Notes: generated from the letters alone by a model not told the origin. Positions 7,708 to 35,016 are shown, counted from the first letter of the stretch. The stretch is 35,016 bases of DNA from Macrostomum lignano (GCA_002269645.1 NIVC01004789.1:1-35016); one strand, 5' to 3'. A program made the numbers and translations.

Positions 7708-7741
<34 letters not shown>

Positions 7742-8717
7742 GCAGCATCAGCAGCGTTTATTGGACCACAAACAACAACAACCACAACAGCAACAGCAGC
7801 ATCAGCAGCATTTATTGGACCACAAACAACAACAACAACCACAACAGCAACAGCAGCATCAGCAGCGTTTATTGGACCACAAACAGCAACAACAACCACA
7901 ACAGCAACAGCAGCATCAGCAGCATTTATTGGACCACAAAAAACAACAACCACAACAGCAACAGCAGCATCAGCAGCGTTTATTGGACCACAAACAACAA
8001 CAACCACAACAGCAGCCGCAGCATCAGCAGCGTTTATTGGACCACAAACAACAACAACAACCACAACAGCAACAGCAGCATCAGCAGCGTTTATTGGACC
8101 ACAAACAACAACAACCACAACAGCAACAGCAGCATCAGCAGCGTTTATTGGACCACAAACAACAACAACCACAACAGCAACAGCAGCATCAGCAGCGTTT
8201 ATTGGACCACAAACAACAACAACCACAACAGCAACAGCAGCATCAGCAGCGTTTATTGGACCACAAACAACAACAACAACCACAACAGCAACAGCAGCAT
8301 CAGCAGCGTTTATTGGACCACAAACAACAACAACCACAACAGCAACAGCAGCGGGTATGGCAGCACGGAGACAGCGAGCCAGGGAATTTACCGGCTGATA
8401 ATCATGGAAAATCCCAGATCGAGGATGCTGGCGAGACTTTGTCCGGCTCAGAGATGCCCAGCGTCACCGACAGCGAGCAGAAATCTTCCAGCACGCAGCA
8501 GCAGCTGCAGCAGCTGCGGAGACTTCAAGCGCACCGTCTGAGGCGCGCCTCCAGCAGCAGCAAAACTCAAATCGGTCAATCGGGCGTCAAGGATGTCCTG
8601 GTGGCAAGCAGTCAGCCGGACAACGCGGATGGTCGGGAGCTGCCAGTCCTGCGGGTTGTTGTGGCCGATAGTCAGGAGTTCTCGGAGCCGATCGTGGCGC
8701 GCCTCCTGTTCGACTAG
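5415..8717 (+). CDS. Large single-exon, low-complexity His/Gln/Arg-rich repeat protein (first in-frame ATG 5415; may start at 5089/5122 through a frameshift near 5320)
   Basis: A 3.5 kb stop-free frame (5208-8717) extends through long non-repetitive stretches. All internal repeat units are multiples of 3 (36, 48, 51, 54 nt), unlike most non-coding arrays here. AATAAA near 9152. Confidence 0.7.
6234..6870 (+). repeat. Coding tandem repeat of 48 and 36 nt units (RPRDHVHSVQDEGIVV / RSRDHVHSGNVV)
   Basis: Read directly in DNA and in the ORF translation. Confidence 0.95.
7712..8350 (+). repeat. Coding polyQ tract followed by ~12 copies of a 51-54 nt unit (QQQQHQQRLLDHKQQQP)
   Basis: Read directly in DNA and translation; unit length varies only by whole codons. 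Confidence 0.95.
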
Positions 8718-10089: not shown

Positions 10090-11545
10090 TAGCATCAAGC
10101 AGTCTTTACCCTCCGTATCAGTCTTTATCCTCCGTATCAGTCTTTACCCTCCGTATCAGTCTTTACCCTCCGTATCAGTCTTTATCCTCCGTATCAGTCT
10201 TTACCCTCCGTATCAGTCTTTATCCTCCGTATCAGTCTTTACCCTCCGTATCAGTCTTTATCCTCCGTATCAGTCTTTACCCTCCGTATCAGTCTTTATC
10301 CTCCGTATCAGTCTTTACCCTCCGTATCAGTCTTTACGCTCCGTATCAGTCTTTACCCTCCGTATCAGACAGTCTTTACCCTCCGTATCAGACAGTCTTT
10401 ACCCTCCGTATCAGTCTTTACCCTCCGTATCAGTCTTTATCCTCCGTATCAGTCTTTACCCTCCGTATCAGTCTTTATCCTCCGTATCAGTCTTTACCCT
10501 CCGTATCAGTCTTTATCCTCCGTATCAGTCTTTACCCTCCGTATCAGTCTTTACGCTCCGTATCAGTCTTTACCCTCCGTATCAGACAGTCTTTACCCTC
10601 CGTATCAGACAGTCTTTACCCTCCGTATCAGTATTTACCCTCCGTATCAGTCTTTATCCTCCGTATCAGTCTTTACCCTCCGTATCAGTCTTTACGCTCC
10701 GTATCAGTCTTTACCCTCCGTATCAGACAGTCTTTACCCTCCGTATCAGACAGTCTTTACCCTCCGTATCAGACAGTCTTTACCCTCCGTATCAGACAGT
10801 CTTTACCCTCCGTATCAGTCTTTACCCTCCGTATCAGTCTTTACCCTCCGTATCAGACAGTCTTTACCCTCCGTATCAGACAGTCTTTACCCTCCGTATC
10901 AGACAGTCTTTACCCTCCGTATCAGACAGTCTTTACCCTCCGTATCAGTCTTTACCCTCCGTATCAGTCTTTACCCTCCGTATCAGACAGTCTTTACCCT
11001 CCGTATCAGACAGTCTTTACCCTCCGTATCAGACAGTCTTTACCCTCCGTATCAGACAGTCTTTACCCTCCGTATCAGACAGTCTTTACCCTCCGTATCA
11101 GACAGTCTTTACCCTCCGTATCAGACAGTCTTTACCCTCCGTATCAGACAGTCTTTACCCTCCACATCAGACAGTCTTTACCCTCCGTATCAGACAGTCT
11201 TTACCCTCCACATCAGACAGTCTTTACCCTCCGTATCAGACAGTTTTTACCCTCCGTATCAGACAGTCTTTACCCTCCACATCAGACAGTCTTTACCCTC
11301 CGTATCAGACAGTCTTTACCCTCCGTATCAGACAGTCTTTACCCTCCACATCAGACAGTTTTTACCCTCCACATCAGACAGTCTTTACCCTCCACATCAG
11401 ACAGTCTTTACCCTCCGTATCAGACAGCCTTTACCCTCCGTATCAATCTTTACCCTCCGTATCAGTCTTTACCCTCCGGATCAGTTTTTACCCTCCACAT
11501 CAAGCAGTCTTTACCCTCCACATCAAGCAACCTTCACCCTCCGCA
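10090..11545. repeat. 19/23 bp minisatellite (tcag[acag]tctttaccctccgta)n, ~1.45 kb
   Basis: Direct reading; 19 bp units and a 23 bp variant with a 4 nt insertion. Confidence 0.97.
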
Positions 11546-11668
11546 TCAAGCCTTCAAACCACGGAGGTCTTTAAACTTCACGACAAGGCATTTATCCTCA
11601 ACGTAATAAAATCTCATAAGTCCTCAGCCTCATTTACGAGTAAAACTTGATCATTTCCCCCCAAAGTT

Positions 11669-14361
11669 TCATCCCAATGAGTACCTCGAGCTGCCCCAGG
11701 CGGCAGCTGTGGCGGCCGCTCCGCTGAGCCTCTCGGCCCCCAGGGCCCTCGCCAGCCTCTCCGCCTCGGCCTCCAGCTCGCCGCAGCGCTGCCTCTGCCT
11801 CGCCAGCTCCCGGCCACGGAGGTCGGCCTCTGTCTGAGCTGCGTCCAGCCTCTCCTGCATCAGCTGCAGCTCAGTGCGAGCCTCGTGAGCTTCGAGTCGG
11901 CTTCGCTGCTCCCTGTCCTGACAGGCGCTCAGCTCCGCTTGCTCCGCCTCCAGCTCCGCCTCCAGCCGCTCCGCCGTCTCCTGCGACTCCCGCAGCTCCG
12001 CCTCCAGCCGGCGCAGCCGCTCCGCCGCCTCAGCCTCGAGCTGGCGGCTCCGCCGCTCACCGTCGGCCGTGTCTTCTGCCTGCCGGCCGAGGCGTCGCTC
12101 CAGCAGCTGCAGCCGCTCGCCGACCTCCGCGCAGTGCAGCCGCTGCGCCGCCTCCCGGCTGGCCAGCTCGGCCCGCTCGGCCGCCATCTGGCGAGGGAGT
12201 GGCGAGTGCGACTGAGTGAGCGAATGCGGGTGCAACCGAGGCCCGCGGAGCCTCTCTGTCTGGCCCTTGGGTCCCTTGAAACTTCACAATAGCATCTCTC
12301 CTCTCATCCCATCTCTTCTTTCATCCTATCTCTCCTCTCATCCTATCTCTCCTCCAATCTCTTCTCTCCTCCCATCTCTCCTCTCCTCTTATCCCATTTC
12401 TCCTCTCATCCCATCTCTCCTCTCATCCCATCTCTCCTCTCATCCCATCTCTCCTCTCATCCCATCTCTCCTCTCATCCCATCTCTCCTCTCATCCCATC
12501 TCTCCTCTCATCCAATCTTTCCTCTCCTCCCATCTCTCCTCTCCTCTTTCCTCTTCTCTATTCCTTCTTCTTTCCTTTCTCAGCTTCAAGTGTTTTTTGA
12601 GTTCCTTTTAGAAAATTGTAGTTTCGAGAAAGATTAGGGACCAAGAAACTTGACAGGTCCCCCAAAAAAGGTGCTGCATCTGCTCCCACTGACTCACCGC
12701 TCTGAGGGCCGCTTCAAGCTCAGTTGAGCGCAGCTCCAGCCGCGACCTTTCAGCCTCCGCAGCCTCCGCCGTTGCTCTCAGCCTCTCGCGCTCCGCGGCC
12801 GCCCGCCTCAGCTCCGTTACTGTCTCGTCCCGCTCAGCCTCCAGCCGCTTCATCATCGTCTGAGCCGACGTGGCGCCGGCCGCTGACTGACGCCGAAGTC
12901 GCTGCTGCTCGGCCTGCGCCTCCGCCAGCGCCCGCGCCAGCTCGCCGCGCTCTCTGGCCAACGATCGGACCTCGGCTTGGATGTCGCTCAGGTGGCGCTC
13001 GAACTTGTCCAGCACCTGGCGGAGCTCGTCCCGCTCTCGGCGAACTCTGGACAGCTCGGCTGCCGCAGTCAGCTGCGACCGGCCCGGCGAGGGCGACCTG
13101 CGGCGCTGTGGGAGAGCGTTTGACCAACACTGCTCAGATCTGACCAGCTCTGCTCGGATCTGACCAACTCTGCTCGGATCTGATCAACTCTGCTCGGATC
13201 TGACCAACTCTGCTCGGATCTGACCAACTCTGCTCAGGTTTGATCAACTCTGCTCAGATCTGACCAACTCTGCTCAGATCTGACCAACTCTGCTCGGATC
13301 TGACCAACTCTGACAGTTCCCAACAACCCCAGCTTCGCCCACCTGTCCGTCTCGCAGTCTCTCCTGGCTGTCAGCCCGGCCGCCGCTCAGAGCCGGCATC
13401 CGCATCATCCGCGACAGCCGATCGGCCTCCGCCTTCCAGAATTCGCGGTCTTCCTCAACTCCGCGCAGGTACCGCTCCAGCTGCGCCGCCGAGGCCGAGT
13501 CCCCAGCGACACCACCGCCGCCTCCAGTCCCGATTTTCCTTCGTAGCCGCTCCAGCTCCAACACCAACTCGCGTTCTGATTGTGGAATATGAGCAGAGAA
13601 CTTCTAGCATCGTTTGTCATAGAATTTAGACATATGGCCCCAAAACTGAATTTTAATCTTCTTTGAAGGTTGTTTGAAGTTGTTTTTGAGTCACTTTGAA
13701 AATGGAAGATAAAAGCCGCCGAAACTTACCGCAGGCGGTCAGGCGCAGAATTCGCTGGGCGAGCCGCTGCTTGTCTTCCTGCTGCTGGGCCACAATGCTG
13801 CGCAGCTCCTCCAGGTCCAGCATCGAGCAGCTGACGGCTCCATCGCGGCCGCCGTTTCCGCTGGATGGTCGCCGCTGACGCGAATTTCCAGAACAGTCCT
13901 GCAGCCGCTGACGGTCCTGCAGCGGGTGGTTGGAAAATGCAGAGACTGTCCGCTTCTCTGAGCTCAACTAGAAGGATTTCTGGCAGGTAACAACGTTTCA
14001 AATTTGGGCAGTCAAGACGACTTCACTGACAGCATGACAGCAGCTTACTGTAGGCATCACTGACAGCATGACAGCAGCTTACTGTAGGCATCACTGACAT
14101 GACAGCAGTTTACTGTAGACATCACTGACAACATGACAGCAGCTTGCTGTAAGCGATACATTGAGGTTTGCAGATCAAGGACATCATTCTCAGAAGAGAT
14201 TCATAGCTCGTATGTCAGCTAAAAGTGAGATTTTAAAATCCTTTTATTCTGACTACTAATTAAGAGGCTTTCAATGGGATAAAATCCTAATGCCGCTGGG
14301 GAGGCCTCTGGATGGAACTCACGCTGGCCCTGGCGGATGCGGATCTCTTCAGCGCTGGCAT
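11669..14361 (-). CDS. CEP135: CEP135/TSGA10-family centriolar coiled-coil protein; exons 14361-14323, 13916-13730, 13575-13343, 13105-12698, 12187-11669 (or spliced at 11685 to a last exon 9988-9778)
   Basis: All junctions are GT-AG and phase-consistent (0,1,0,0). The translation LEELRSIVAQQQEDKQRLAQRILRLTACERELVLELERLR..QLERYLRGVEEDREFWKAEADRL..RERDELRQVLDKFERHLSDIQAEVRSLARERGEL matches, from recall, the CEP135 middle region (LETVVHQLEQEKQRLSKK..RLDTFLKGIEEERDYYKKELERL..RERDELQRMLERFEKYMEDIQSNVKLLTAERDKL). The start codon and last exon are less certain. Confidence 0.82.
12292..12560. repeat. CT-rich degenerate repeat (catctctcctctcatcc)n in an intron
   Basis: Direct reading; lies inside intron 12188-12697. 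Confidence 0.9.
13132..13312. repeat. 20 bp minisatellite (tctgaccaactctgctcgga)n, ~9 copies, intronic
   Basis: Direct reading; fills most of intron 13106-13342. Confidence 0.93.
14025..14150. repeat. ~34 bp tandem repeat (actgacagcatgacagcagcttactgtaggcatc), ~3.5 copies, intronic
   Basis: Direct reading within intron 13917-14322. Confidence 0.85.
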
Positions 14362-18412: not shown

Positions 18413-18918
18413 TTGAGCTGTTGCCCTTGCCAACTGTTCCAGCCTCAGCAGCAGCCCTGACAACTCGACCTTCATCACCAACATACAAGCATTCATACAA
18501 GCTGTCTCAATTCATGGGCCGGAAGCAGAGGCTGCCCCGCAGGCAAGAGGACGATGTTGCCATTGCTGGCAGCGTCTTCACTGATTCGCCAGACAATGCA
18601 GTTGAGGTCGCGACTTCCCTGAGGCGGCCGCTGAGCGTCACCCAGGCAGCTGCCGAGCTGGATGGCGGCGCCACCGTGCCGATTGTGTTCTCGCCCTCGC
18701 CAACTCCGCCGCTGTCGCCCTCGCTGGTGTCAGCGGCTTCATCTTTGCTGTCCTCGCCGCCGATCCCGCTGCTAACAGCGTCGACAAGTTCCGCTGCTTC
18801 GCCGCCGCCACCACCGCCGCGAAAGCAGCTGCGCCTTGTTGCGCGGGCGTCGACTGAGCAGCCGCAGCAGCAGCGACTGCCGCGCAGGCAGAATCGAAAG
18901 CGAAGCCTTGCAGCTGAG
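18413..18918 (+). CDS. Isolated candidate exon, Ser/Pro/Ala-rich with basic patches, function unknown
   Basis: GC-rich open frame within AT-rich flanks, bounded by ttttatag| and gag|gtgaag. Partner exons not identified. Confidence 0.35.
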
Positions 18919-19124
18919 GTGAAGCCCTTATTGTTGTGTGCACCTGTGTGCGTACAGTTCACAGAGAATCCAGACCATTAGGGTTGCCTCCATTGTCAAG
19001 TTTTTTGTCTGGTCATTTTGTTCGACTTTGGCATTGTGCTAAATATAGATATGCAAAATGGAATATACGTTTTTTAGAACAACTGTTTAAGATAGGGGGC
19101 GAAGTAAACAGGGTATCATGTTAT

Positions 19125-20525
19125 AGGACTGGAGGGTAGCACTGAACGACTGGAGGGTAGGCATTAAAAGACCGGAGGGTAACACTAAAGGACGGGAGGG
19201 TAGCACTAAAGGACCAGAGGGTAACAGTAAAGGACTGGAGGGTAGCACTAAAGGACCGGAGGGTAACACTAAAAGACCGGAGGGTAGCACTAGAGGACCG
19301 GAGGGTAACACTAAAGGACCGGAGAGTAGCACTAAAAGACCGGAGGGTAGCACTAGAGGACCGGAGGGTAACACTAAAGGACCGGAGAGTAGCACTAAAA
19401 GACCGGAGGGTAGCACTAAGACCGGAGGGTAGCACTAAAAGACCAAAAGACCGGAGGGTAGCACTAAAGGACCGGAGGGTAACACTAAAAGACCGGAGGG
19501 TAGCACTAAAGGACCGGAGGGTAACACTAAAGGACCGGAGGGTAGCACTAAAGGACCGGAGGGTAACACTAAAGGACCGGAGGGTAACACTAAAAGACCG
19601 GAGGGTAGCACTAGAGGACCGGAGGGTAACACTAAAGGACCGGAGAGTAGCACTAAAAGACCGGAGGGTAGCACTAGAGGACCGGAGGGTAGCACTAGAG
19701 GACCGGAGGGTAGCACTAAAGGACCGGAGGGTAGCACTAAAAGACCGGAGGTAGCACTAAAGGACCGGAGGGTAGCACTAAAAAACCGGAGGGTAACACT
19801 AAAGGACCGGAGGGTAGCACTAGAGGACCGGAGGGTAGCACTAGAGGACCGGAGGGTAGCACTAAAGGACCGGAGGGTAGCACTAAAAAACCGGAGGGTA
19901 GCACTAAAAGACCGAGGTAGCACTAAAGGACCGGAGGGTAGCACTAAAAAACCGGAGGTAGCACTAAAGGACCGGAGGGTAACACTAAAGGACCGGAGGG
20001 TAGCACTAAAGGACCGGAGGGTAGCACTAAAAAACCGGAGGTAGCACTAAAGGACCGGAGGGTAACACTAAAGGACCGGAGGGTAGCACTAAAAAACCGG
20101 AGGGTAGCACTAAAAAACCGGAGGTAGCACTAAAGGACGGAGGGTAACACTAAAAAACCGGAGGGTAGCACTAAAGGACCGGAGGGTAGCACTAAAAGAC
20201 CGGAGGTAGCACTAAAGGACCGGAGGGTAACACTAAAAAACCGGAGGGTAGCACTAAAGGACCGGAGGGTAACACTAAAAAACCGGAGGGTAGCACTAAA
20301 GGACCGGAGGGTAGCACTAAAAGACCGGAGGTAGCACTAAAGGACCGGAGGGTAACACTAAAAAACCGGAGGGTAACACTAAAGGACCGGAGGGTAGCAC
20401 TAAAGGACCGGAGGGTAACACCAAAGGACCGGAGGGTAGCACTAAAGGACCGGAGGTAGCACTAAAGGACCGGAGGGTAACACTAAAGGACCGGAGGGTA
20501 ACACCAAAGGACCGGAGGGTAAGCA
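19125..20525. repeat. 21 bp minisatellite (ggaccggagggtagcactaaa)n, ~1.4 kb
   Basis: Direct reading; occasional 20 bp units. Confidence 0.97.
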
Positions 20526-21225
20526 TTAAAGAGCACAATCAACCGCACAGTCACACTTTTGCGGTGACTCGAGCATATTGTTTTTCATTAAAAATTTAGG
20601 AAAGAGCTAGTTATTTAGGAAAGATAAGCGCTGATCTGAAGAGCCCCAGGCCCAGTTAAAGTACTCAGCAGGGGGTGCTGACGTCATCAGAAGCTATTTT
20701 GTGTCACCGCCACTCAGCTAAAGTGAATTGGCATGAATTCTATATAATTTCACATTCATTTATCTCGCCTGCCTACCAGAGAGTACAAAAATGCGTCTTA
20801 GACATGTGATTCTTGCTTTCTCCTACTTTTCATTCTCTCTAAACCTCACCCACTCTTGCTACAACTGGCTGTGGAACCGGCCGGTCAGATGACCGAGCCG
20901 CTATTTGAGTGGCGGGTGCAGCCAGTTTTGCATTGCTGCGTACATTCACTCCGCCTGTCTGCCCTGGCCGCTCGCTCTATTAATGGCTAAAGCAAACAAA
21001 TAGCTGGGAGGGTCAGGTGACATTGAGGTATCTGATCTGGCTCGGAGCGGCAGTTCCAGATCGAGTTCACCGTTTAGGATTTCTTTAATTTTACTCTTTG
21101 ATTTTTTTTTGTAAAATTTTACTGCTCATATCCCTGACGCTGTAAGTAGTATGCAAGGCTTTAATATTTTTGTTTACCGTCGTCTTCCAGCCTCTCTCCG
21201 CCGCCCGGTTTGCTTCAACGGCCAG

Positions 21226-22335: not shown

Positions 22336-23704
22336 TGGGCCGCTGCTACCATCCCAAATGTAGAAGATACCCATTGTAGGAGGCTGTGGAAAGTATTCTA
22401 GTCATTTTAATTGTGTTAATGCAAGCATTCAAAAAAGCCTCACACAGTGTCTACAAGTGCTGTGTCCCAAATTTGGAGTTCGAATTCCTCGCGAACAGGC
22501 AGACAAGACAGACAGTTAATAATGCTTCGCACACAAAGACCACGTGGCACAAAGACTTGTGTATGGGAGGGGGTCCGGACGCCCGGAGACGGAGGCCCTG
22601 CAGTTTTTTCTATTCAAACGACTTTCCTAATTTCCTGTCGAGTGTGTTTAATTGCCTTGGGTGTGGTGTGGAATCAAGGCCCAAGACTGGAAGACTCGGA
22701 GTTCTAGCTGTCTGAGACAAAGACTCGAAAGTCTTTATCTAGCACCCATCCATGGCCTGCGTATAGAAATGCTTAGGGCTCTCACAGACAAAGAGACTGG
22801 CGGTGTCCCGCTGCTGTCAGCGTCTCCCGCTCCGTCTTCATCAAGCCAGGGTTTAAAACGACTCCGAAGAAATTGTTGAGCTGGTATTGCTGGGTGCGTC
22901 TGTGTTGATATTCCTGAGCATAGTGAGCATAGGCCAGATGAGGAGCCTGGCATGCCCTTGTCCGTCTGCCTTCCCCATAGCGCGCGCGTGTGACCTACCG
23001 CTCCCCCTTGAGTGACTGCAATATAATATATTTATACCGCGAGTCAGCCAGAGCCAAGTCCGGTCTTTGTGCTGCCAGAGCGGCGAGGCTGTGGGAAGAC
23101 TTCGCTCCCAGTCCCAGCTGGCCAATTCTCCCAAACAATTCTTCTCGATTACTCGAAGCCATCTGGCAGAAACAAGAAGATCGCTGCTTCTTTCAAACCT
23201 CCCCAGCTTTTTTCTTCCCTCTCGCTTTGAATAAATAAAAATCCCAGGCTTCTCCCGCTCGGCCTGGAGATTGGAGTGAACGCTCCCATTGTTGTGCTGA
23301 CGCGTGGCTGGGGGGGGGCTGGGTTCCCGCATCCCCGGATCCAGCTGGTGCGTGCGCTAGCGAAAAAAGCACATGCCCCCATTATCCCTGCAGCTTTTTT
23401 GGATTATGGCTCTTCTTATCTTAATCCGCAAGCCGGACTCCCCATTCTCCCATCCATTGTTATCCCATGTTTGCTTTGCGGCCTGTCGGATCGCCCGGGC
23501 TGGGCAGGGTGGCTGCGCCGCCCTCTGCCCCGTGTTGTTGGCTCGGTGAAACTTTAATTGGTTGGAAAGTGGAGCTGGGGTGGCTGCGGCCTGCGCTCCC
23601 CTCTCCCATTGCGGCCTCATCTGCATATATAAATATATAGCTGCACGCTCACTGGGTGAGATCGGAGACGGAATTTGGAAGCAATTCAAAGCAGCTGAAG
23701 AAGC

Positions 23705-24995
23705 ATGGAGTCGCCATTGATGAAGCAGAAGTCAGCCGCGCAGCCTCCGCAGTTTCTTGCCGGGCTGCTTCGCCTGCCAAGCCGGCCGAAGCTGAACCAG
23801 CAGCACCAGCTGCAGCGTTCGTTCTGTTGCCATGGCAACAGCGTCTCTAGCGACGGCAAGTTTTTCGGCCGACCATTGGAACTGCAGCCAACAACGGAGG
23901 TGCCGGGACTTGGCGCGGTGCCAGCCATCCTGGCCGCCTGCTGTGACCATCTGGCCAGTCACGTGACAGACGAGGGCCTGTTCCGCGTTGAGGCGCCGCG
24001 GTCGCGCCTCGTCGAGCTGCGTCGTCAACTCGATGCCGGCGCCGGGGTCGGCGAAGCGACGCCGCCGAGGGACGTCGCCTGCGCTCTGAAGGCGTGGCTC
24101 CGCGAGCTGCCCGAGCCGCTGCTGCCGCCAGCGATCGCCCAGGAGCTCGCCGAGGCTGCCGCTGTCGGTGTTGCCGACGACGATGGGGCTCGAGCTCGCG
24201 ACCTGCTGCGCCGGCGATGCCGACCTCCGGCCGTGTCGCCAAGCCAACTGCGGGCGCTGCGGCATCTGTGCGAATTTCTGGCCAAGGTGAGGCAGCTGCG
24301 AATTCCATTTCTGATTTTTCAGTTCTCTAACAATTCCTTTGTTTGACTCTAATTAATTCCTCCTTTCTCAACCCCATCAATCACCTGGCCAGGTGGCTCG
24401 GCACTCCGCCTCCAACCGCATGGACGCTGACAATCTGGCCACCTGCCTCGGGCCCTGCCTTCTGCGACACGTGGGCGCAGCGGCTGCCGCCTCCGCAGCC
24501 TCGCCGTTGCTGCCGCCGGCTTCGCCTCGAGACGCCGTTGCCCGGCTGAACGCCGCCGCCGCCTTGCTGGTCCGGCATCACCAAGCGCTCGGCGCCATCG
24601 ACTCGGTGACAGCGGTGGAGCCTCCGCCTCCGGCTGTTGAGGCTGGGAAGCGCGGACGGAGCGGCAGCTGCAGCGGCAGCGGCGGCTCCTTTGCCGCCCT
24701 CCGAGCCGCTGTCGGCCGCTTCGCCAGCAGGTCGCGCTCGCGCAGCCCTGGCAGCCGGCGCGGCCAGGCATCTCCGTTCTCGGCGTCGTCGGCATCGTCG
24801 ACAGCGGCGGCTCGGGCCCCGTTGGCCACCTCATTGCGCAACCTGGTGGCCGCCGCCGCCGCTGGCAGGCGTGCCGCGCCGCTCATCGGCGGCCGCCGTC
24901 CGTCAGCGCAGAGTCCCGCCGCGACGGTTGCTGCAGACGCCGTCCCGGCCGAGCCCGACGCCGCGAGGGCCGGCGGTTCCGGCAGTTTCTGCTGA
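23705..24995 (+). CDS. ARHGAP11A: ARHGAP11-like Rho GTPase-activating protein; exons 23705-24286 and 24393-24995 (tail may extend to 25425 through frameshifts)
   Basis: RhoGAP motifs: KFFGRPL, EGLFR (arginine finger), DVACALKAWLRELPEPLLP, FLAK|VARHSASNRMDADNLATCLGPCLL. The phase-0 intron 24287-24392 is GT-AG. The FGxP..VPxxGxVPxxL segment resembles ARHGAP11A from recall. Confidence 0.88.
23824..23841. promoter_or_regulatory. Perfect 18 bp palindrome containing a consensus RFX X-box (GTTGCCATGGCAAC), inside coding exon 1
   Basis: The sequence ctGTTGCCATGGCAACag is seen directly; function is unproven. Confidence 0.35.
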
Positions 24996-25756
24996 GCCGG
25001 CTTGGCGGCCAGGAACCGCCAAAGTCGCCCAGCTCGTCCAGCTCTGCCTCGCCGCCTTCGCTGACTTCGCCGTCCTCCCCGCCGTCCAGTCTGGAAGTGT
25101 CGACGCCGCCGTCTCGGTGCCGTCCCGGTGATTCTCGCCGACGGCGCCTCCTGCGATGTCGCCGAGTTGGCGGTGGTCGCCGCGGATTCGACGAGTCGCC
25201 GTCCAGCGGCGGCGGCGCAGCGGCTTCTCGCCCCGCGACAGCCTGCGCGCCCTCCGGCTTCGGGGAGTTCGTCGGCAGAACGGCGGCGGCAGCGGCGGCA
25301 GCGGCGGCAGCGGTAGCGGCGGAGTCGGCCGGCGCTGGCCGCGGCTTCTGATCTCGCCGTCGTCCATGAAGGCCCGCCTGCTTCGGTCCGAAGGCCTGCT
25401 GAGCTCCGCTCGGTTGAAGCCTTGAAGTCAGGAGGATTTGCTTGATAGATAATTGACCGCTTGCTCTTTCACTTTGCAGCATAAATTCTATTGTATATAA
25501 TCTTATACTCTTAGTTTACTATTACTGCCAGTGTCTGCCAATATTTGCACCATACCAATATATTTCGAAATGTGCTGTGCTTTGCATTTTAACTAAATTC
25601 GAAAAAGCAGCTGCGTCTTGGGATTTTAAATCAATTTTATGCTTTGGAAATATTTTTGTTTACTTGCGATGCTCAAATTGTTGGTTTTGTGTGGACATTA
25701 GTATACAAGTTTATTGTCTTATTCCGAAGGTCCTGTACCTCTGCTTGGTAGGTGCC

Positions 25757-26425
25757 GCTGCTTCTCCCCACTGAGCTTCAGTTGGTGCTGCTTCTCCCAC
25801 TGAGCTTCAGTGGGTGCTGCTGTTCCCCCTCCTGAGCTTCAGTGGGTGCTGCTGTTCCCCCTCCTGAGCTTCAGTGGTGCTGCTGTTCCCCCTCTTGAGC
25901 TTCAGTGGGTGCTGCTGTTCCCCCTCCTGAGCTTCAGTGGGTGCTGCTGTTCCCCCTCCTGAGCTTCAGTGGGTGCTGCTGTTCCCCCTCCTGAGCTTCA
26001 GTGGGTGCTGCTGTTCCCCCTCCTGAGCTTCAGTGGGTGCTGCTGTTCCCCCTCCTGAGCTTCAGTGGGTGCTGCTGTTCCCCCTCCTGAGCTTCAGTTG
26101 GTGCTGGTGTTCCCTCCTGAGCTTCAGTGGGTGCTGCTGTTCCCCCTCCTGAGCTTCAGTGGGTGCTGCTGTTCCCCCTCCTGAGCTTCAGTGGGTGCTG
26201 CTGTTCCCCCTCCTGAGCTTCAGTGGGTGCTGGTGTTCCCTCCTGAGCTTCAGTGGGTGCTGCTGTTCCCCCTCCTGAGCTTCAGTGGGTGCTGCTGTTT
26301 CCCCTCCTGAGCTTCAGTGGGTGCTGCTGTTCCCCCTCCTGAGCTTCAGTTGGTGCTGCTTCTCCCACTGAGCTTCAGTGGGTGCTGCTGTTCCCCCTCC
26401 TGAGCTTCAGTGGGTGCTGCTGTTT
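25757..26425. repeat. 32 bp minisatellite (tgagcttcagtgggtgctgctgttccccctcc)n, ~20 copies
   Basis: Direct reading. Confidence 0.96.
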
Positions 26426-27427
26426 CAAAGGTTTTTTCATCCGTGCACTGAAACGGATATAGAACTTGATATAGCGAATTAATCATTGACTGGGTGCCTT
26501 TATTTGCCTTCAGATTTTTCAACTGTTTTTCTCTTAGCATAAGAAAACTTGAAGTCGCTCGCTATAGTTCGGCCTAAACTGTTTACCTTCGTAATCAAGG
26601 GAAACTGATGAAGGGAGCAGCATCCAGCTTCTCCCAGACTGGCCCGCCACTTGCCGAATAGAGCCGTCTGATAGATTTGTCTCCCCGGGGAGTCCGTAAT
26701 CCCGACACCTATTCACTGTCCCCAAGCAATTCCCTATTCAGCCCATTGACTTTTTATTTCACACCCGTGCTGGGGTGGGCGCTGCGGGACTGTTGGCTTC
26801 CACTTCACTGATCCTCTGAGCAAACGAATTAAAGTAAATGGATAATTTATCCCCGAACCAGTTTGATTGCGCAACGGGTCCTGCGGGTCTCTGGGCGGTT
26901 TTGAGGAATTAAATCTCTTTTTTTCCTCCTAACCCCATCTTCTGTAAGCAGACTGATTGCTCCCTCCCAGAGTTCCATTCCTGCCAGGTGGGTCAGGGGG
27001 CCGGGAGCTGACATCTGCTTGCTCGGGAAGGGGTTGCGTCACCGCTCGACTTCTGGCGGGAATAAATCTGGGGCTTGGGGGGCTGCTTCTTTTTTGCAGG
27101 TGAAAATGGGATTTCTGCCTGAATTGGGCTGGGGATCTCAGATCGGAGAAGGTTAAAGCTGCGCTGCCGACTTTTCTCCCCTAATATTATTGTTGCTAAG
27201 GCGAGCTGCGGCCTCGCAACTGTTGCGGGTGGTCCCGGCTGGCCGGGCTGGGGCTGGGACTGCCTGGCAATCGGACACCGGCCGTCTCATCTTTCCTCCG
27301 GCTGCGCGCATCTGCGCCTGCCTGCTTTTTTAGGGTTGCGCTGCCGCGCTGAGCTCGGGTTTCCTCCCGGCCCCAACCAGTGGAGCGAAAGTTGGTGCCG
27401 ACTGCGGCTGACTTTGCCTGGCCTTGC

Positions 27428-27513
27428 CGTGTCTGTCTGTCTGCCTGTCTGTCTGTCTGTCTGTCTGTCTGTGTCTGTCTGTATGTCTGTCTGTCTGTCT
27501 TTCTGTGTGTGTG

Positions 27514-27545
<32 letters not shown>

Positions 27546-27612
27546 CATGTCTGTCCATGTCTGTCTGTCTGTATGTCTGTCTGTCCATGTCTGTCTGTCC
27601 ATGTCTGTCTGT
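27428..27612. repeat. (GTCT)n microsatellite
   Basis: Direct reading. Confidence 0.96.
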
Positions 27613-28832
27613 CATTCTGCATATCTATCTAATTGCGTTTTATCAATTGCTGCCGTGTCCCAGCAATTAAATGCAGTTAAAATAAAGTATACTGTTGTTT
27701 TTCACTTTATTACTAAGCTATTCACACGGCAGTAAACACCCGCAGCCAGCTCACATGAGACAACCCAGCTCTCCATTTCACCAATTCCACAATCCGATGC
27801 GAACATGTTGTGTTGGCCGCATTGTTTATGCATGCATTGTAAATCAAGTGGCTGGCTGGGTGGCACAGGGCTGCCTTACCAATTAATTAATTGGCCAAGT
27901 TTGTGCTTTCCCTGGCGTGGGCAACAAATGAAACCCGATCCACTGCTATCTCCCTGGCTTCCGAAGGCCGCAAGTGTGCGGGCCACTTCGTAAAGCAGAC
28001 ACTTTCAATTGTTCACTTTGAAAGATGTGTTCACTTCATAACCAGTTAGCAATTTTTGCAAACACCAACAAGCTTCAATCTTTCGATTGCAGGAGCCTCA
28101 GCTGCCGGCTGTGGGGCCGCTGCTGGAGCTGGAGGAGCTGTTCCGCTGGAGCAGATCTGGTCTCAGCAGGGCGACTGGCTGCTCCCCTAGTGACCCCGGC
28201 TCGGCTGGGTCCGTGTTCGCTGTTTTCAATTCTGTTTTTGTTTGGAGTTCAGATGCGTTTAGGCTTTGCCAACCGGACTGGTTGATTTTATCCAGGTAGG
28301 AAAATTCCGTTTTAATTCCTCTTGTTTGCTGGCATTTCGGCTGTCATTGCGGCTCTCCCTGTCTTCTAGAAGCGGCAGATGTTCTCAGCTGATGCATTTC
28401 TGTTAATCGCCAACTTTTTGAGAAAAAAAATTCAAACTCGTTTTTGTTAATCTGGTCTGTAAAAATATTTAGCAAAAGTTATATTATATGTATTGTTATT
28501 AAACAGTGCATTTCTGCCAGCAATGCTTCACAATGGCGTACATTTCACACTGGCACGCAGCCTTCCAGTTTAAACGCAATTATCGAAATTCTCTATTTCT
28601 CTCATCATTTTTGAGTTTTCAGTTTCTCATCCCGCTGCCTTGTAGCCAGTCGGACATCAGGCCCTGCTCGGTTCCTATTTGATTAGATAGGTTTATTAAG
28701 ACAAATAAACAGTTTATGTAAGCCTGCCCGAACTCTTTCCCGGCTTTGGGTTCGGCTGCTTTTTTACTTTTTTTGAATGTTGGTCTTGCTGAGATCTTCT
28801 TTTAGCTTTACCTGCTAGTGTGGGTTTAGAGA

Positions 28833-29410
28833 TGATTGCTAGTCTAGCCAATCATGGATGCGGGATTAGAGTGGATTGCTAGTCTAGCCAATCATGGATG
28901 CGGGATTAGAGTGGATTGCTAGTCTAGCCAATCATGGGTGCGGGATTAGAGTGGATTGCTAGTCTAGCCAATCATGGATGCGGGATTAGAGTGGATTGCT
29001 AGTCTAGCCAATCACGGATGCGGGATTAGAGTGGATTGCTAGTCTAGCCAATCACGGATGCGGGATTAGAGTGGATTGCTAGTCTAGCCAATCATGGATG
29101 CGGGATTAGAGTGGATTGCTAGTCTAGCCAATCATGGATGCGGGATTAGAGTGGATTGCTAGTCTAGCCAATCATGGATGCGGGATTAGAGTGGATTGCT
29201 AGTCTAGCCAATCATGGATGCGGGATTAGAGTGGATTGCTAGTCTAGCCAATCATGGATGCGGGATTAGAGTGGATTGCTAGTCTAGCCAATCATGGATG
29301 CGGGATTAGAGTGGATTGCTAGTCTAGCCAATCATGGATGCGGGATTAGAGTGGATTGCTAGTCTAGCCAATCATGGATGCGGATTAGAGTGGATTGCTA
29401 GTCTAGCCAA
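28833..29410. repeat. 40 bp minisatellite (gattgctagtctagccaatcatggatgcgggattagagtg)n, ~14.5 copies
   Basis: Near-perfect 40 bp period ending ~70 bp upstream of the GNAT-1 ATG. Confidence 0.97.
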
Positions 29411-29472
29411 AGTGAATAAACGATATTGAATTACTAATCTATTCTTTTTCTCAAATCTAATTTTCAGCTGCG

Positions 29473-29487
29473 GTCGCCCATGGAAAC
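29473..29487. promoter_or_regulatory. X-box-like sequence GTCGCC-CAT-GGAAAC overlapping the GNAT-1 start codon
   Basis: Fits the RFX consensus GTNRCC-N(0-3)-RGNAAC; may partly reflect Kozak context plus Met-Glu-Thr codons. Confidence 0.3.
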
Positions 29488-31176
29488 GCAGGACTCGACG
29501 GCGAGGGCGGCTGATTTGCCACGGCAGGTGCAGCTGCGGCCCGCAGGCCGGCGGAGGATGCGGAGTTTGTGGCGCTGTGCGTTCGCGACTTGGCGGTCAG
29601 CCACGAGGGCATGCTGCCGTTCTGCCACATGGGCGCCAGCGACCACTTTCGGGTGCTGCAGTCCGGCCTGGCCCGTCTTCTGGTGGCCGAGGCAGCCGGA
29701 CGGCCGGCCGGATTCGCGCTGTACACCCGGTGCCACCTGGACAGGCAGCCTAGGCCAGGACTCTACCTGCAGGCTGTGTACGTGTGCGAGGACTACCGGG
29801 GCTGAAGGTGAGAGCGATCAGTGAGGCTGTTATGATGTGCTTAACTAGCTACTTGTAGTAATAAGAGGCACACTTCTAGTAGTAGTAGTACTACTAATAC
29901 TAATACTACTACTACTACTACTACTGCTACTACTACTGCTACTACAACTACTACTACTAATACTACTACTACTTGCAGGTAGGCAAGTCTCTACTCGTGG
30001 CTCTGGCTCGCCAGGCCTTGGCAACCGGCTGCGACCACATCAAGCTGATTGTGCACACAGATAACGAGGCTCTGTCCTGGTACCAGCGCATTGGCTTCCA
30101 GGTGCTCACAGAGACCGAGGGGGTCGCCTTTTTTGAGATGAATGACGTGGACTTTGTTGCTGGCCTGGTGGCCGCAGCCGAGCAGCCGCTGCCAGACGGA
30201 GCCAGCCTGCGCCTGCGGCCCTGCGACGGCGCCGACGGTAGGCGATTCGAACTTCGGACTTCCGGCTGCGACTGTCGCCTGTTTGGCGCCTCCGAGCTCA
30301 GCTACTGCATGTGGGAGGGGGAGGCGGTGCAGGTGAGAGCTCAGCTACTGCATGTGAGAGGGAGAGGCGGTGCAGGTGAGAGCTCAGCTACTGCATGTGG
30401 GAGGGGGAGGCGGTGCAGGTGAGAGCTCAGCTACTGCATGTGGGAGGGGAGGCGGTGCAGGTGAGAGCTCAGCTGCTGCATGTGGGAGGGGGAGGCGGTG
30501 CAGGTGAGAGCTCAGCTACTGCATGTGGGAGGGGGAGGCGGTGCAGGTGAGAGCTCAGCTACTGCATGTGAGAGGGAGAGGCGGTGCAGGTGAGAGCTCA
30601 GCTACTGCATGTGGGAGGGGGAGGCGGTGCAGGTGAGAGCTCAGCTACTGCATGTGGGAGGGGAGGCGGTGCAGGTGAGAGCTCAGCTACTGCATGTGGG
30701 AGGGGAGGCGGTGCAGGTGAGAGCTCAGCTACTGCATGTGGGAGGGAGAGGCGGTGCAGGTGAGTGCTCATAGGAGGCTTGAGCACAGGAGATGCAGAAA
30801 CCCGTCAGCTTCCACTGCCAACCCCCAGATCGACTTGTCGGCCGAGAGGCCGGTCTGCGCTGCCGCATCGGAGTGCGGCGCCGTCAGCTCCGCCTCGCTG
30901 AAGTGCCTGATGGGCCGCCTGCTGCAGCTGGCCGCTGCCGACAAGCCCACCCTACCGTCGCCGCATATCGTGTGGGTTGACACCGTCGCCAACCGACCGA
31001 CTTCCGGCGGACTCGATGACCTGCTGATGCGCGCCGGCTTCGAGAACAACACGGCCAATGAAGGCTGGCTGATCTGCCTGCTGGCCGGCCGGCCGCTGCA
31101 CCTGCTGGCCAACAGGCCGCTGAACTGCCGCCTGCACCCGGAGCTGGCCGGCTGCCCGGATTCACTGTCTGACTGA
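29480..31176 (+). CDS. SSAT/SAT1-like GNAT acetyltransferase with a second, degenerate GNAT domain (paralogue 1); exons 29480-29807, 29979-30332, 30829-31176; two apparent -1 frameshifts in exon 1
   Basis: LVAEAAGRPAGFALY, GLYLQAVYVCEDYRG[LK]|VGKSLLVALARQA, LIVHTDNEALSWYQRIGF match GNAT motifs D, A and B. Introns are phase 0 and GT-AG. One extra base is needed near 29545 and in the G-run at ~29798-29801. Confidence 0.8.
29875..29973. repeat. (TAG)n/(CTA)n trinucleotide microsatellite in GNAT-1 intron 1
   Basis: Direct reading; the orientation switch creates the palindrome TAGTAGTACTACTA; it abuts the acceptor ttgcag. Confidence 0.93.
30294..30763 (+). repeat. 43 bp tandem repeat made of the last 39 nt of exon 2 plus the donor GTGA, ~11 copies
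   Basis: Unit gagctcagctactgcatgtgggagggggaggcggtgcag|gtga; the first copy is coding (ELSYCMWEGEAVQ). Confidence 0.95.
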
Positions 31177-31183
31177 GAGAGAT

Positions 31184-31593
31184 GTGAGAGTCCTGATCCC
31201 CACTGTGAGAGGCCTGATCCCCACTGTGAAAGTCCTGATCCCCACTGTGAGAGTCCTGATCCCCACTGTGAGAGTTCTGATCCCCACTGTGAGAGTCCTG
31301 ATCCCCAATGTGAGAGTCTTGATCCCCACTGTGAGAGTCCTGATCCCCACTGTGAGAGTCCTGATCCCCACTGTGAGAGTCCTGATCCCCACTGTGAGAG
31401 TCCTGATCCCCACTTTGAGAGTCCTGATCCCCAATGTGAGAGTCCTGATCCCCACTATGAGAGTCCTGATCCCCATTGTGAGAATCCTGATCCCCACTGT
31501 GAGAGTCCTGATCCCCACTTTGAGAGTCCTGATCCCCATTGTGAGAGTCCTGATCCCCAATGTGAGAGTCCTGATCCCCACTGTGAGAGTCCT
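31184..31593. repeat. 21 bp minisatellite (gagagtcctgatccccactgt)n, ~19-20 copies
   Basis: Direct reading; begins 7 nt after the GNAT-1 stop. Confidence 0.96.
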
Positions 31594-32034
31594 GTTTACT
31601 CATTATCTCCTTATCTCTGATCACAGGTCATCTTAGGGTTCGAGTCCTGACTTTACAGTTGGACCAACGCTAATCTTCAGTATTTGATTTACTTCTATAC
31701 TACTATGAGTAGGTTCCGCTTATTCTGGTAATCTTTTATGCAAACTTTAACACAGATCTATCGCTTAGCAGCTCAAACTAAATCGCTGTTTTAATATATC
31801 CTTTTATGCTTAAATTTTAACACTTACACATTGCTCTAACAGTAGTGCGCTGTGCCTAATCCAGTGTAGCTCTCTTAACGTATCAAGCACTCTACTAACT
31901 GATCGCTTGCTGTGCCTTAATATGTTCAACTTTATTTTCTGACTTTAACCTGTTTCTTAACAGAAGTTTTAGTTTTTTGTGGCACTAACCTACCTCACAT
32001 TACATGCAATGTCCTTGATTCTTGACCCTTGACT

Positions 32035-32985
32035 AATGAACCATCCTTGTCTCTTATGAACCATCCTTGACTCTTATGACCCATCATTGACTCTTATGAC
32101 CCATCATTGACTCTTATGACCCATCATTGACTCTTATGAACCATCCTTGACTCTTATGACCCATCCTTGATTCTCATGACCCATCATTGACCCTTATGAC
32201 TCATCCTTGATTCTCATGACCCATCATTGACTCTTATGAACCATCTTTGACTCTTATGACCCATCCTTGACTCTTATGACCCATCATTGACTCTTGTGAC
32301 CCATCATTGACTCTTATGACCCATCATTGACTCTTATGAACCATCCTTGACTCTTATGACCCATCATTGACTCTTATTAACCATCCTTGACTCTTATTAA
32401 CCATCCTTGACTCTTATGACCCATCCTTGATTCTCATGACCCATCATTGACCCTTATGACCCATCCTTGATTCTCATGACCCATCATTGACTCTTATGAC
32501 CCATCATTGACTCTTATGACCCATCATTGACTCTTATGACCCATCATTGACTCTTATAAATAATCTTTGACTCTTATGACCCATCCTTGACTCTTATAAA
32601 CCATCCTTGACTCTTATGACCCATCCTTGATTCTCATGACCCATCATTGACCCTTATGACCCATCCTTGATTCTCATGACCCATCATTGACTCTTATGAC
32701 CCATCATTGACTCTTATGACCCATCATTGACTCTTATGACCCATCATTGACTCTTATAAATAATCTTTGACTCTTATGACCCATCCTTGACTCTTATAAA
32801 CCATCCTTGACTCTTATGAACCATCCTTGATTCTCATGACCCATCCTTGATTTCTCATGACCCATCATTGACCCTTATGACCCATCCTTGATTCTCATGA
32901 CCCATCATTGACCCTTATGACCCTTCCTTGATTCTCATGACCCATCATTGACCCTTATGACCCATCCTTGATTCTTTTGACCCAT
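32035..32985. repeat. 20 bp minisatellite (gacccatcattgactcttat)n, ~47 copies, with a 200 bp higher-order duplication
   Basis: Direct reading; 32401-32600 reads identical to 32601-32800. Confidence 0.96.
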
Positions 32986-33139
32986 CCATGGCAAGACGTA
33001 TTTAACTCACCACAATACACGCAAAAATTTACTGTCTGCAGCTAATTCTACTTTTAGTAGGCTGTTGCGCCTAACAAGTCAAAATGCTTAGAATAAAAAA
33101 TTATTATTATTAACAACATCCCGCATTTGCAGTCAGCCG

Positions 33140-33153
33140 GTTGCCATGGAAAC
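33140..33153. promoter_or_regulatory. Consensus X-box GTTGCC-AT-GGAAAC overlapping the GNAT-2 start codon
   Basis: Matches the ciliary RFX consensus GTYNYY-AT-RGNAAC; partly explained by Kozak context plus MET codons. Confidence 0.4.
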
Positions 33154-34403
33154 TCAGATACAAATTAGACGCGGCACGGCGGACGACATCGAGGCGGTGG
33201 CCGCGCAGGAGCTGGAGCTGGCGAACAGCCACAATGGCATGCAGCTGTACTGCCGGATCGAGTGCGATGAGCACCACCGGATGCTGCTGCCGGCCTGCTC
33301 AAACTGCTGGTCGCCGCCGACTGCCAGTCCGGCCGGGTGGTCGGCTTCCTGCTGTACACGCCGTCTTACATGCACAGCCAGCCCGAGCCCGGCTTCTATG
33401 TGCAGAGCCTCTTTGTGGAGCTGGACTACCGGCGGCACAGGGTGAGGCTTCTTGGGGTCCTCAGTGATTGGGCCGCTGCCTCATTTGGGTCCTCAGTGAC
33501 TGGGCCGCTGCCTCATTCGGGTCCTCAGTGATTGGGCCGCTGCCTCTTCGGGTCCTCAGTGACTGGGCCACTGCCTCATTCGGGTCCTCAGTGACTGGGC
33601 CGCTGCCTCATTCGGGTCCTCAGTGACTGGGCCGCTGCCTCATTCGGGTCCTCAGTGACTGGGCCGCTGCCTCATTCGGGTCATCAGTGATTGGGCCGCC
33701 AAATCTCGCTGGACCAACTGCAACTCTGGTTGGCAACCCGCAGGTCGGCCAGTCGCTGCTGGCCACGCTGGGCCGCCTCGCCGCCTCCTCCGGCTTCGGC
33801 CACCTGAAGCTGCTGGTGCAGCGCAGCAACGCGCCGGCCGTGAACTGCTACAGACGTCTGGGGGTTCGAATTCCTGAGCGATACGGAGAACATCGGCTTC
33901 TTCGAGCTGTGGCCGGCCAAGTTCGTGAACTCGATGCTTCGGGCGGGTCGCCGGCCGCTGCCGCCGGCCTCAGCCTGGAGCTGCGGGACTGCGACGGCCG
34001 GCTGTCGGGCGGGCTGGAGGCCGGGCGGCGTTCGCCCTGACCTGCGCGGCCTGCGACTGCCGCCTTCAGGGCACCGCGCGCTCACCTACTGCATGTGGGA
34101 CGGCTGCATCATGCTGGCCGACCTGCGGCTGGTGCGGCCCGCCTGCGCCCAGCGGCCCTGCCAGCTGCTGAGCGTCGCCAATCTGAAGCGGCTGCTGGGC
34201 CGCCTGGCACTCAGCCTGGCTGCGTCGCCAAGGCGGCTTTGGCTGGAGGCGCCTCGGCAGCAGACCGAGCTGCACCGGATGCTGCTGCACACCGACTGGA
34301 GGACTTGGACGGCCGCCACGACGGAGACTGGGTCGTCTGCGCGCTGCGGGGCGCCAGCTCTGCGGCCTGGCGGAGCGGCAAGTCGCGGATCATTTGTGAT
34401 TGA
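33146..34403 (+). CDS. SSAT/SAT1-like double-domain GNAT (paralogue 2); exons 33146-33441 and 33744-34403; about six frameshifts, so either sequence errors or a pseudogene
   Basis: METQIQIRRGTADDIE..ELA, LLVAADCQSGRVVGFLLY, GFYVQSLFVELDYRRHR|VGQSLLATLG, LLVQRSNAPAVNCYRRLG. Collinear with paralogue 1 when frames are switched (FEFLSDTENIGFFEL, PLP, LELRDCDG, CDCRL, LTYCMWDG, LKRLLGRL, WVVCALRG). Same motif-A intron position. Confidence 0.75.
33454..33698. repeat. 32 bp minisatellite (gggtcctcagtgactgggccgctgcctcattc)n, ~7.5 copies, in the GNAT-2 intron
   Basis: Direct reading; fills intron 33442-33743. Confidence 0.94.
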
Positions 34404-34432
34404 GGCCGACTGTGCTGCGCCTGCGATTCTGT

Positions 34433-34975
34433 AGTGTGCTCAGCAGTGTGCTCAGCAGTGTGCTCAGCAGTGTGCTCAGCAGTGTGCCAGTAGTGTGCTC
34501 AGCAGTGTGCTCAGCAGTGTGCTCAGTAGTTTGCTCAGCAGTGTGCTCAGCAGTGTGCTTAGTAGTGTGCTCAGCAGTGTGCTCAGCAGTGTGCTCAGCA
34601 GTGTGCTTAGTAGTGTGCTCAGCAGTGTGCTCAGCAGTGTGCTTAGTAGTGTGCTCAGCAGTGTGCTCAGCAGTGTGCTCAGTAGTGTGCTCAGCAGTGT
34701 GCTCAGTAGTGTGCTCAGCAGTGTGCTCAGCAGTGTACTCAGTAGTGTGCTCAGCACTGTGCTCATCAGTGTGCTCAGCGGTGTGCTCAGCACTGTGCTC
34801 AGCCGTGTGCTCAGCAGTGTGCTCAGTAGTGTGCTCAGTAGTGTGCTCAGTAGTGTGCTCAGCAGTGTACTCAGTATGTGCTCAGCACTGTGCTCATCAG
34901 TGTGCCAGCAGTGTGCTCAGCACTGTGCTCAGCGTGTGCTCAGCAGTGTGCTCAGTAGTGTGCTCAGCAGTGATG
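34433..34975. repeat. 12 bp minisatellite (agcagtgtgctc)n, ~45 copies
   Basis: Direct reading; begins ~30 nt after the GNAT-2 stop. Confidence 0.96.
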
Positions 34976-35016
34976 CTGAGTTTATTATTTGCAGTATTGT
35001 TTGCAGTTTGCACTAA

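Follow-up and report, generated by a model that had tools for sequence, protein, structure and literature searches.

Gene content of the locus

The 35,016 bp sequence analysed here, referred to below as the window, is an entire contig (NIVC01004789.1) of the Macrostomum lignano Mlig_3_7 assembly (GCA_002269645.1). The first-pass annotation, made from the sequence itself, had placed a tandem pair of single-chain double-GNAT proteins at 29480–34403. Two genes on the same strand, gene 1 and gene 2, are indeed present there, but they are the first two members of a four-gene cluster, the window contig ending past gene 2. In three other copies of the locus, on L001 (NIVC01004736.1), the sister contig L002 and L003 (NIVC01000731.1, 459 kb), a single strand carries, in order, a RhoGAP gene, gene 1, gene 2, gene 3 (336 aa) and gene 4 (337–340 aa), and intact full-length products (P0017, P0005, P0008 and P0012) are encoded on these contigs. 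Gene 1 shares ~41% identity with the other paralogues, while genes 4 and 2 are ~63% identical. The proteins are uncharacterised, their deposited names in GenBank and UniProt being 'hypothetical protein BOX15_Mlig...' and 'N-acetyltransferase domain-containing protein'.

Each product joins a recognisable GNAT domain to a C-terminal half which, from structure prediction and profile comparison, is probably a degenerate, truncated and non-catalytic GNAT. A single open reading frame (ORF) spans both halves in RNA-seq-guided transcript models (annotation method, PMC5730564). There is no split into two proteins, in keeping with the single chain proposed at first pass.

Gene models and assembly errors

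Reading through the window requires two 1-nt repairs in gene 1 and eight in gene 2. Comparison of window positions 23138–35016 with L001 1–11891 reveals 99.64% identity and 43 differences, only one of which is a substitution. The remaining 42 are single-base indels, 37 of them inside homopolymers and 32 involving G/C, and they are distributed over coding, intron and intergenic DNA alike. Because of this 42:1 ratio of indels to substitutions, the homopolymer and G/C bias and the even spread between coding and non-coding sequence, the window frameshifts are attributed to long-read consensus or assembly error rather than to gene decay. The Mlig_3_7 assembly, made from PacBio reads with Canu and then polished with Pilon, is known to include 180 Mb of duplicated blocks at at least 95% identity, and its annotation derives from a genome-guided RNA-seq transcriptome and TransDecoder ORFs (PMC5730564). 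As a redundant and poorly polished copy, the window contig does not allow reliable ORF calls. The practical yield of the comparison is a set of corrected gene models (Table 1), with the broken frames of the window assigned to the assembly.

Table 1. Exons and introns of genes 1 and 2, numbered from the first base of the window
Feature	Coordinates	Strand	Content
Gene 1 exon 1	29480–29807	+	Met to EDYRGLK, N-domain GNAT strands β1–β4
Gene 1 intron 1	29808–29978	+	GT..AG, phase 0; holds a (TAC)n array
Gene 1 exon 2	29979–30332	+	N-domain α3 to β6 including the Tyr in WYQRIG, then start of the C-half
Gene 1 intron 2	30333–30828	+	Largely a 43-bp tandem array; acceptor 30829 backed by PAA77652.1 and the equivalent gene 4 intron
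Gene 1 exon 3	30829–31176	+	Remaining C-half: IDLSAERPVC ... NEGWLICLLAGRPLHLLANR ... SLSD, stop
Gene 2 exon 1	33146–33441	+	METQIQIRRG ... LDYRRHR; one base absent at 33289
Gene 2 intron	33442–33743	+	Contains a 32-bp x 7.7 tandem array (33455–33699)
Gene 2 exon 2	33744–34434	+	Rest of the N-domain, C-half from ~33949, stop 34432–34434

In gene 1, both deficits lie in exon 1, where a G is absent at 29543 and the G-run at 29798–29801 is one G short, generating an in-frame TGA at 29803. The shortened run (GGGG) is common to the window, L001 and L002, while L003 has GGGGG; the shared GGGG/TGA may be a recurrent homopolymer error or a genuine null allele in some copies. The intact gene 1 product on L003 is 347 aa long (P0017, PAA77652.1), and the repaired window model agrees with it residue for residue after four leader residues. 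Database matches of the repaired protein are confined to M. lignano entries. The C-half of gene 1 begins at ~30180 and spans 30180–30332 and 30829–31173, the exon 2 part reading LRLRPCDG ... CDCRL ... SYCMWEGEAVQ. Intron 1 interrupts motif A, between YRGLK and VGKS, at a position kept in all four paralogues.

The array that forms the bulk of intron 2 (30294–30770, 43-bp unit x 11.2) has units which each repeat the last ~26 nt of exon 2 together with the GT donor, so that ~11 donor sites are reiterated within the intron. An alternative exon 3 acceptor at ~30927, which is used in P0001 and skips 32 aa, was rejected in favour of 30829, since PAA77652.1, P0026 and the paralogues retain those 32 aa. 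On the window contig itself two proteins are annotated, PAA46586.1 and PAA46587.1, the latter (P0019, 180 aa) at gene 1 exon 3.

In gene 2, exon 2 carries an extra G at 33860 and lacks bases at 33961, 34030, 34078, 34294, 34354 and 34393. The end of the gene had been set at 34403, but this stop is false, belonging to a frame made by the missing bases at 34354 and 34393. An intact 334-aa product is encoded on both L001 and L002 (P0005, PAA46119.1/PAA46698.1). The earlier frame repairs were otherwise sound, leading to a 343-aa protein for gene 1 (PAA77652.1 without its four leader residues) and a 330-aa protein for gene 2 (PAA46119.1).

The N-terminal half

Sequence matches identify the N-half (~170 aa) as a complete GNAT domain from the SSAT/thialysine-acetyltransferase lineage. 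Pfam Acetyltransf_1 (PF00583, clan CL0257) reaches 45.7 and 45.9 bits, the cut-off being 20.7 (E 8e-12 to 9e-12; residues 66–150 in gene 1), and PF13508 and PF13673 (Acetyltransf_7 and Acetyltransf_10) are likewise above cut-off on this half, with matches at residues ~55–165. The best PDB sequence matches, again confined to the N-half, are a thialysine acetyltransferase (12jc, E 1.1e-12) and a Pseudomonas aeruginosa protein (2fe7, E 4.6e-12), followed by SAT2 (SSAT2; 2bei, E 1.4e-8), plant NATA1 and SAT1 (~E 2e-6 to 3e-6). In a search of 5.8 billion sequences, the nearest relatives outside Macrostomum are single-domain GNATs of 145–195 aa with 26–43% identity. Features held in common with SAT1, SAT2, 2FE7 and 12JC include the β1 'IRP/IRxG' and β4 'LYLxxxxV' segments, the 'N..A...Y.R.G' motif, the general-acid Tyr and, in altered form, motif A.

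The general-acid Tyr (hSSAT Y140) in α4 is invariant in the N-half (WYQRIG / CYRRLG), and the α4 motif N..A...Y.R.G is retained, its Tyr, Arg and Gly being invariant. In the alignment, both SAT1 Trp positions are lost. Pfam, the PDB matches and the alignment thus agree with the original description of a SAT1-like domain that keeps the Tyr and has lost both Trp motifs. The retention of motif A, also claimed, is partial. Gene 1 has RGLKVG and genes 2–4 RRH(R/Q)VG, compared with RGFGIG and the general Q/R-x-x-G-x-G/A; the first Arg and last Gly stand, but Lys, Arg or Gln takes the place of the central Gly.

A further change, not mentioned at first pass, affects the general base. The position of hSSAT Glu92 (β4) is Gln in all four paralogues (LYLQAVYV / FYVQSLFV), compared with Glu or Asp in 13 of 13 aligned sequences from outside Macrostomum. 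An E92Q mutation in mouse SSAT confirmed this residue as essential, while some GNATs work without a dedicated general base (PMC4964394). For Trp84 and Trp154 of SSAT, the open-literature search gave no usable account of their roles, and for this reason no role is asserted for their equivalents here.

The C-terminal half

The C-half (~165 aa) is, by sequence, lineage-restricted. When 1.84 billion representative proteins were searched exhaustively with a HMMER profile, its relatives were limited to M. lignano, apart from one 2278-aa repeat protein (P0007), which was discounted as a low-complexity false match. Three items argue for a GNAT nature: one AlphaFold model of moderate confidence, the Foldseek ranking of that model, and a weak profile similarity. 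Together they make a GNAT fold supported but not proven, and the C-half is probably a degenerate, truncated and non-catalytic member of that fold.

The AlphaFold model of the gene 2 protein has a mean predicted local distance difference test score (pLDDT) of 63 and a predicted template-modelling score of 0.60, with 10-residue blocks of the C-half ranging from 45 to 85. In this model the C-half has the order β-β-β-β-α-β-α-β, which is the GNAT order without α1/α2. The gene 1 model gives the same order of strands and helices at a mean pLDDT of 46.8, its C-half (pLDDT 25–48) being unusable. With the gene 2 model as the Foldseek query, each of the top 50 PDB matches is a protein with two GNAT domains, aligned over 326–365 columns; the ranking is led by CBG (2wpx, E 2.4e-11) and then VipF, Eis, GlmA, 2i00 and 3n7z, with identities of 8–17%. 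The gene 1 model, in which the C-half is effectively unmodelled, serves as an internal control and retrieves single-domain GNATs only, over ~150–190 columns.

At the profile level, hhalign aligns the C-half with the single-domain relatives of the N-half over 82 collinear columns that begin where β3 ends and reach the C-terminus (P 0.034); in a column-shuffle control, four of 300 shuffles reach the observed score (empirical p ~0.013). A Smith–Waterman alignment of P0031 with the gene 2 C-half gives z 2.9 and is collinear through β4-α3-β5-α4-β6 and the terminal helix. In the hhalign register, YCMW[ED]G falls on the family motif Y-S-T-[WF]-x-G, and W-x-x-C-x-L-x-G-x-x-L-x-x-LA on W-x-V-Y-R-L-x-G-x-x-L-x-x-LA. 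The C-half therefore appears to retain the SAT1/SAT2-family segments YxxWxG and W....L.G..L..LA. It is through the profile-level and predicted-structure evidence that the C-half rises above chance, short motif matches being insignificant by themselves.

Both Trp motifs attributed to this half, YCMW[ED]G and the later Trp (W-x-x-C), are conserved in the C-halves of all paralogues and occupy the register originally proposed for them. The accompanying suggestion that the half lacks motif A and the Tyr also agrees with the alignment. Positions aligned to the P-loop, Tyr and Glu are unconserved, the Tyr being replaced (LLMRAG / MLLHTG) and the Glu position occupied by Ile or Ala.

Relationship to known two-domain GNAT proteins

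Single-chain double GNATs in which one domain is inactive and shapes the acceptor site are already a described class (PMC10936415, PMC12219266, PMC4964394), and the layout is not, as had been supposed, without precedent: MshD, CBG, GlmA, VipF, Eis, NMT and HisAT all have it. As is proposed for the M. lignano proteins, mycothiol synthase MshD (1OZP/2C27), CBG (2WPX, from the clavulanic acid cluster), GlmA (5KF1), Legionella VipF (6WQB/7WX5) and the first two domains of Eis have two GNAT-type domains in a chain of ~300–340 aa. In these tandem-GNAT enzymes one domain is catalytic and the other helps to build the acceptor site (PMC10936415, PMC4964394), and the same layout is proposed here. However, both of their domains are complete and recognised by Pfam, usually each with a P-loop, and the active one is C-terminal. 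In the M. lignano proteins the active candidate is N-terminal, and the putative second domain, which Pfam does not detect, has neither α1/α2 nor a P-loop. The tandem-GNAT enzymes and the M. lignano proteins are unrelated in sequence; the NCBIfam model for MshD scores 15–19 bits against a cut-off of 163, and on the N-half only.

N-myristoyltransferase (NMT) and HisAT/NAT16 are double-GNAT enzymes. Their N-terminal GNAT binds acyl-CoA, and a second GNAT without CoA-binding residues provides acceptor contacts, in HisAT a single Trp (PMC12219266). These families are ancient and widespread and share no sequence similarity with the M. lignano family, which is seen in M. lignano only. In their double-GNAT fold, strands are swapped and the first GNAT is interrupted by the second between β6 and β7; neither NMT nor HisAT is among the top 50 Foldseek matches of the gene 2 model. 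SAT1/SAT2-type enzymes, in turn, are single-domain proteins of ~170 aa that form β7-swapped homodimers (PMC4964394). Compared with these, the M. lignano N-domain has Gln for Glu, lacks both Trp residues and is fused in cis to a putative degenerate second domain. What is undescribed is the combination of an SSAT-lineage catalytic domain with a truncated, Pfam-invisible second domain, found so far in one flatworm and amplified fourfold.

Evolution and transcription of the cluster

The family is fast-evolving, yet all four paralogues retain an open frame and fixed Cys, Trp and Gly positions. Pairwise ratios of non-synonymous to synonymous divergence (dN/dS) are 0.48–0.71 in the N-half and 0.64–0.74 in the C-half. 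Purifying selection is significant for the N-half in the comparison of gene 2 with gene 4, where the proportion of non-synonymous differences (pN) is 0.21 against a synonymous proportion (pS) of 0.37. Only genes 1 and 4 have a second intron, which follows YCMW[ED]GxxxQ. Exon 2 is near-identical between genes 2 and 3 (dS 0.048), but exon 1 has diverged (dS 0.28; L001 10001–11308 and 13069–14179), a pattern that suggests gene conversion or exon-level duplication inside the cluster.

In the annotation, the mRNAs of gene 1 and gene 2 start at 29468 and 33133, respectively, right after the AG of ttttcag and tttgcag (window 29461–29479 and 33126–33145), 12–13 nt ahead of each ATG. The upstream gene and genes 1–3 are g1–g4 of one transcriptional unit (Mlig017646), and the cluster looks like a spliced-leader trans-spliced polycistron. 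The cluster transcript ids were not found in the literature searched for expression data. Upstream of the cluster lies the RhoGAP-domain gene (window 23705–25000, +; PF00620 on the L001 and L002 models), and a Ser/Pro-rich gene lies immediately upstream, at 18421–18981 (+) and onward (PAA46586.1, 269 aa on the window contig). Some UniRef models, P0026 among them, fuse the Ser/Pro-rich gene to gene 1, merging two unrelated proteins in one 90%-identity cluster. P0002, P0003, P0004, P0006 and P0026 are mis-framed or fused gene models and were used solely as evidence of sequence variants.

Proposed function and alternative explanations

The reading that we favour, with a probability of roughly 0.6, is that genes 1 and 2 are two of four tandem, co-transcribed paralogues encoding intracellular tandem-GNAT-type proteins of ~335–345 aa, in which the N-domain is the sole candidate for acyl-CoA binding and catalysis and the C-half is what remains of a second GNAT, truncated, non-catalytic and helping to build the acceptor site. 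Since a variant acyl-CoA pyrophosphate loop (R-x-x-K/R-x-G) and the general-acid Tyr are retained in the N-half, this would be the only half able to bind acetyl-CoA. The C-half, with its predicted order β1-β2-β3-β4-α3-β5-α4-β6 and without α1/α2, P-loop or Tyr, may pack against the N-domain and supply part of the acceptor pocket, by analogy with MshD, VipF, NMT and HisAT. Its share of the pocket could include both Trp positions, which in single-domain relatives lie in the enzyme's own chain. Given the rapid evolution of the family and the Gln that every copy carries in place of the SSAT general-base Glu, a classical polyamine is probably not the acceptor, or else turnover is low.

The first-pass annotation had gone further, proposing complementary loss between the halves to give a pseudo-dimer with a single active site. 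This is plausible and fits the residue pattern. 'One active site by division of labour', however, overlooks the general-base Glu, which is missing from both halves; its absence would imply low activity, another mechanism or an acceptor unlike that of SSAT. A fuller scenario along these lines, which we offer as speculation and regard as rather unlikely, is that in an animal lineage an obligate SSAT-type homodimer was converted to a single-chain heterodimer. A duplicated SSAT-like domain, fused in cis, would have lost α1/α2, the CoA loop and the catalytic Tyr but kept both acceptor-site Trp residues, which then disappeared from the catalytic domain. Intramolecular complementation of this kind would give a single, asymmetric active site that has a new acceptor specificity and works without Glu. 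The gene would then have given rise to four fast-evolving paralogues in one trans-spliced unit. If the C-half is indeed a pared-down SSAT-like domain, the cluster would provide a recent, traceable case of the origin of a tandem GNAT, in which a dimeric enzyme became a single-chain pseudo-dimer with residues partitioned between its halves and for which four paralogues at differing divergence can be compared. It would also give a fold and a testable function to a region of ~165 aa that is blank in databases, in a model organism for regeneration.

A number of results weigh against the tandem-GNAT interpretation. In the Pfam check proposed for each half, Acetyltransf_1 was found on the N-half, but nothing matched the C-half at E ≤ 1. 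All NCBIfam matches were likewise in the N-half, and the C-half profile retrieved nothing from the PDB sequences at E ≤ 10. The GNAT-like character claimed for the second domain is probable from the gene 2 model, Foldseek and hhalign, but is not matched by any family or PDB sequence. Smith–Waterman comparisons with shuffles of the C-half against the N-half or SAT1 gave z values of -1.1 to +1.1, that is, no similarity, and hhalign of the C-half against the N-half (with SAT1) yielded just a 21–32-column match in α4-β6 (E 0.14 and 0.024). As the halves share no detectable similarity, the internal duplication of the N-half put forward at first pass is not demonstrable. A search of the C-halves with the family hidden Markov model (hmmsearch) reached only P 0.08–0.2. 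The AlphaFold input alignment consisted of nine near-redundant rows, and template-modelling scores of the gene 2 model to tandem GNATs are 0.30–0.39, with root-mean-square deviations of 14–17 Å. The modelled arrangement of the domains is thus either unlike that of any known tandem GNAT, or wrong or unreliable. The C-half dN/dS amounts to weak constraint. In addition, seven invariant Cys residues within ~130 residues of the C-half (RxCxG, CDCRL, YCMW, RPxC, one further Cys and WxxC) are unusual for a GNAT domain, and metal or disulfide sites are possible. Finally, the N-domain itself may be inactive, given the change of Glu92 to Gln.

Alternatively, the C-half could be an unrelated, flatworm-specific Cys-rich domain, such as a module stabilised by metal or disulfides or a partly disordered tail, attached to an ordinary single GNAT, the GNAT-like topology and motif matches then being artefacts. 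The empty family and PDB sequence searches, the restriction to M. lignano among 1.84e9 representatives, the seven Cys residues, the low pLDDT of the gene 1 C-half and the marginal sequence statistics (P 0.01–0.2) are all consistent with such a module. On the other hand, two independent predictions agree on β-β-β-β-α-β-α-β, Foldseek favours two-domain proteins over all single-domain GNATs only when the C-half is modelled, and hhalign and Smith–Waterman are collinear over 82–94 columns in the correct GNAT register; we consider the Cys-rich domain a doubtful explanation. Slightly more credible, though still improbable, and overlapping with the favoured reading, is that both halves are catalytically dead and that the proteins are pseudoenzymes with a ligand- or CoA-binding or structural role in a fast-evolving, lineage-specific process. 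The change to Gln in four of four N-domains, at a residue shown to be essential by E92Q in mouse SSAT, points in this direction, as do the Lys or Arg in place of the central motif A Gly and the high dN/dS of both halves (0.48–0.74). Many GNATs, however, have no dedicated general base and still work (PMC4964394); the general-acid Tyr, the motif A Arg and terminal Gly and the α4 residues are invariant, and the N-half is under purifying selection between genes 2 and 4.

Far less probable is that the window copies are decaying pseudogenes, with frameshifts that are true lesions in a part of the DV1 genome that is duplicated and redundant. The two frame breaks in gene 1 and eight indels in gene 2, the short G-run shared with L001 and L002 and the 180 Mb of duplicated blocks in the assembly (PMC5730564) could be read in this way. 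The excess of homopolymer and G/C indels over substitutions is, however, the signature of long-read consensus error, indels occur equally in introns and intergenic DNA, and intact copies exist on L001, L002 and L003.

Other features of the contig

The window sequence is eukaryotic and minisatellite-rich, with 57 rows reported by Tandem Repeats Finder. Very long simple or minisatellite arrays occupy 1–1648, 5208–8717, 10100–11548, 19125–20531, 32036–32987 and 34433–34977; their units include (AGGAG)335, 23-bp x 69, 21/42-bp x 52, 20-bp x 47 and 12-bp x 46. A repeat-rich ORF of 1169 aa extends across 5208–8717. On the opposite strand, 11669–13015 contains two ORFs with a heptad-like Glu/Ala/Arg/Leu composition, which resemble exons of a coiled-coil protein.

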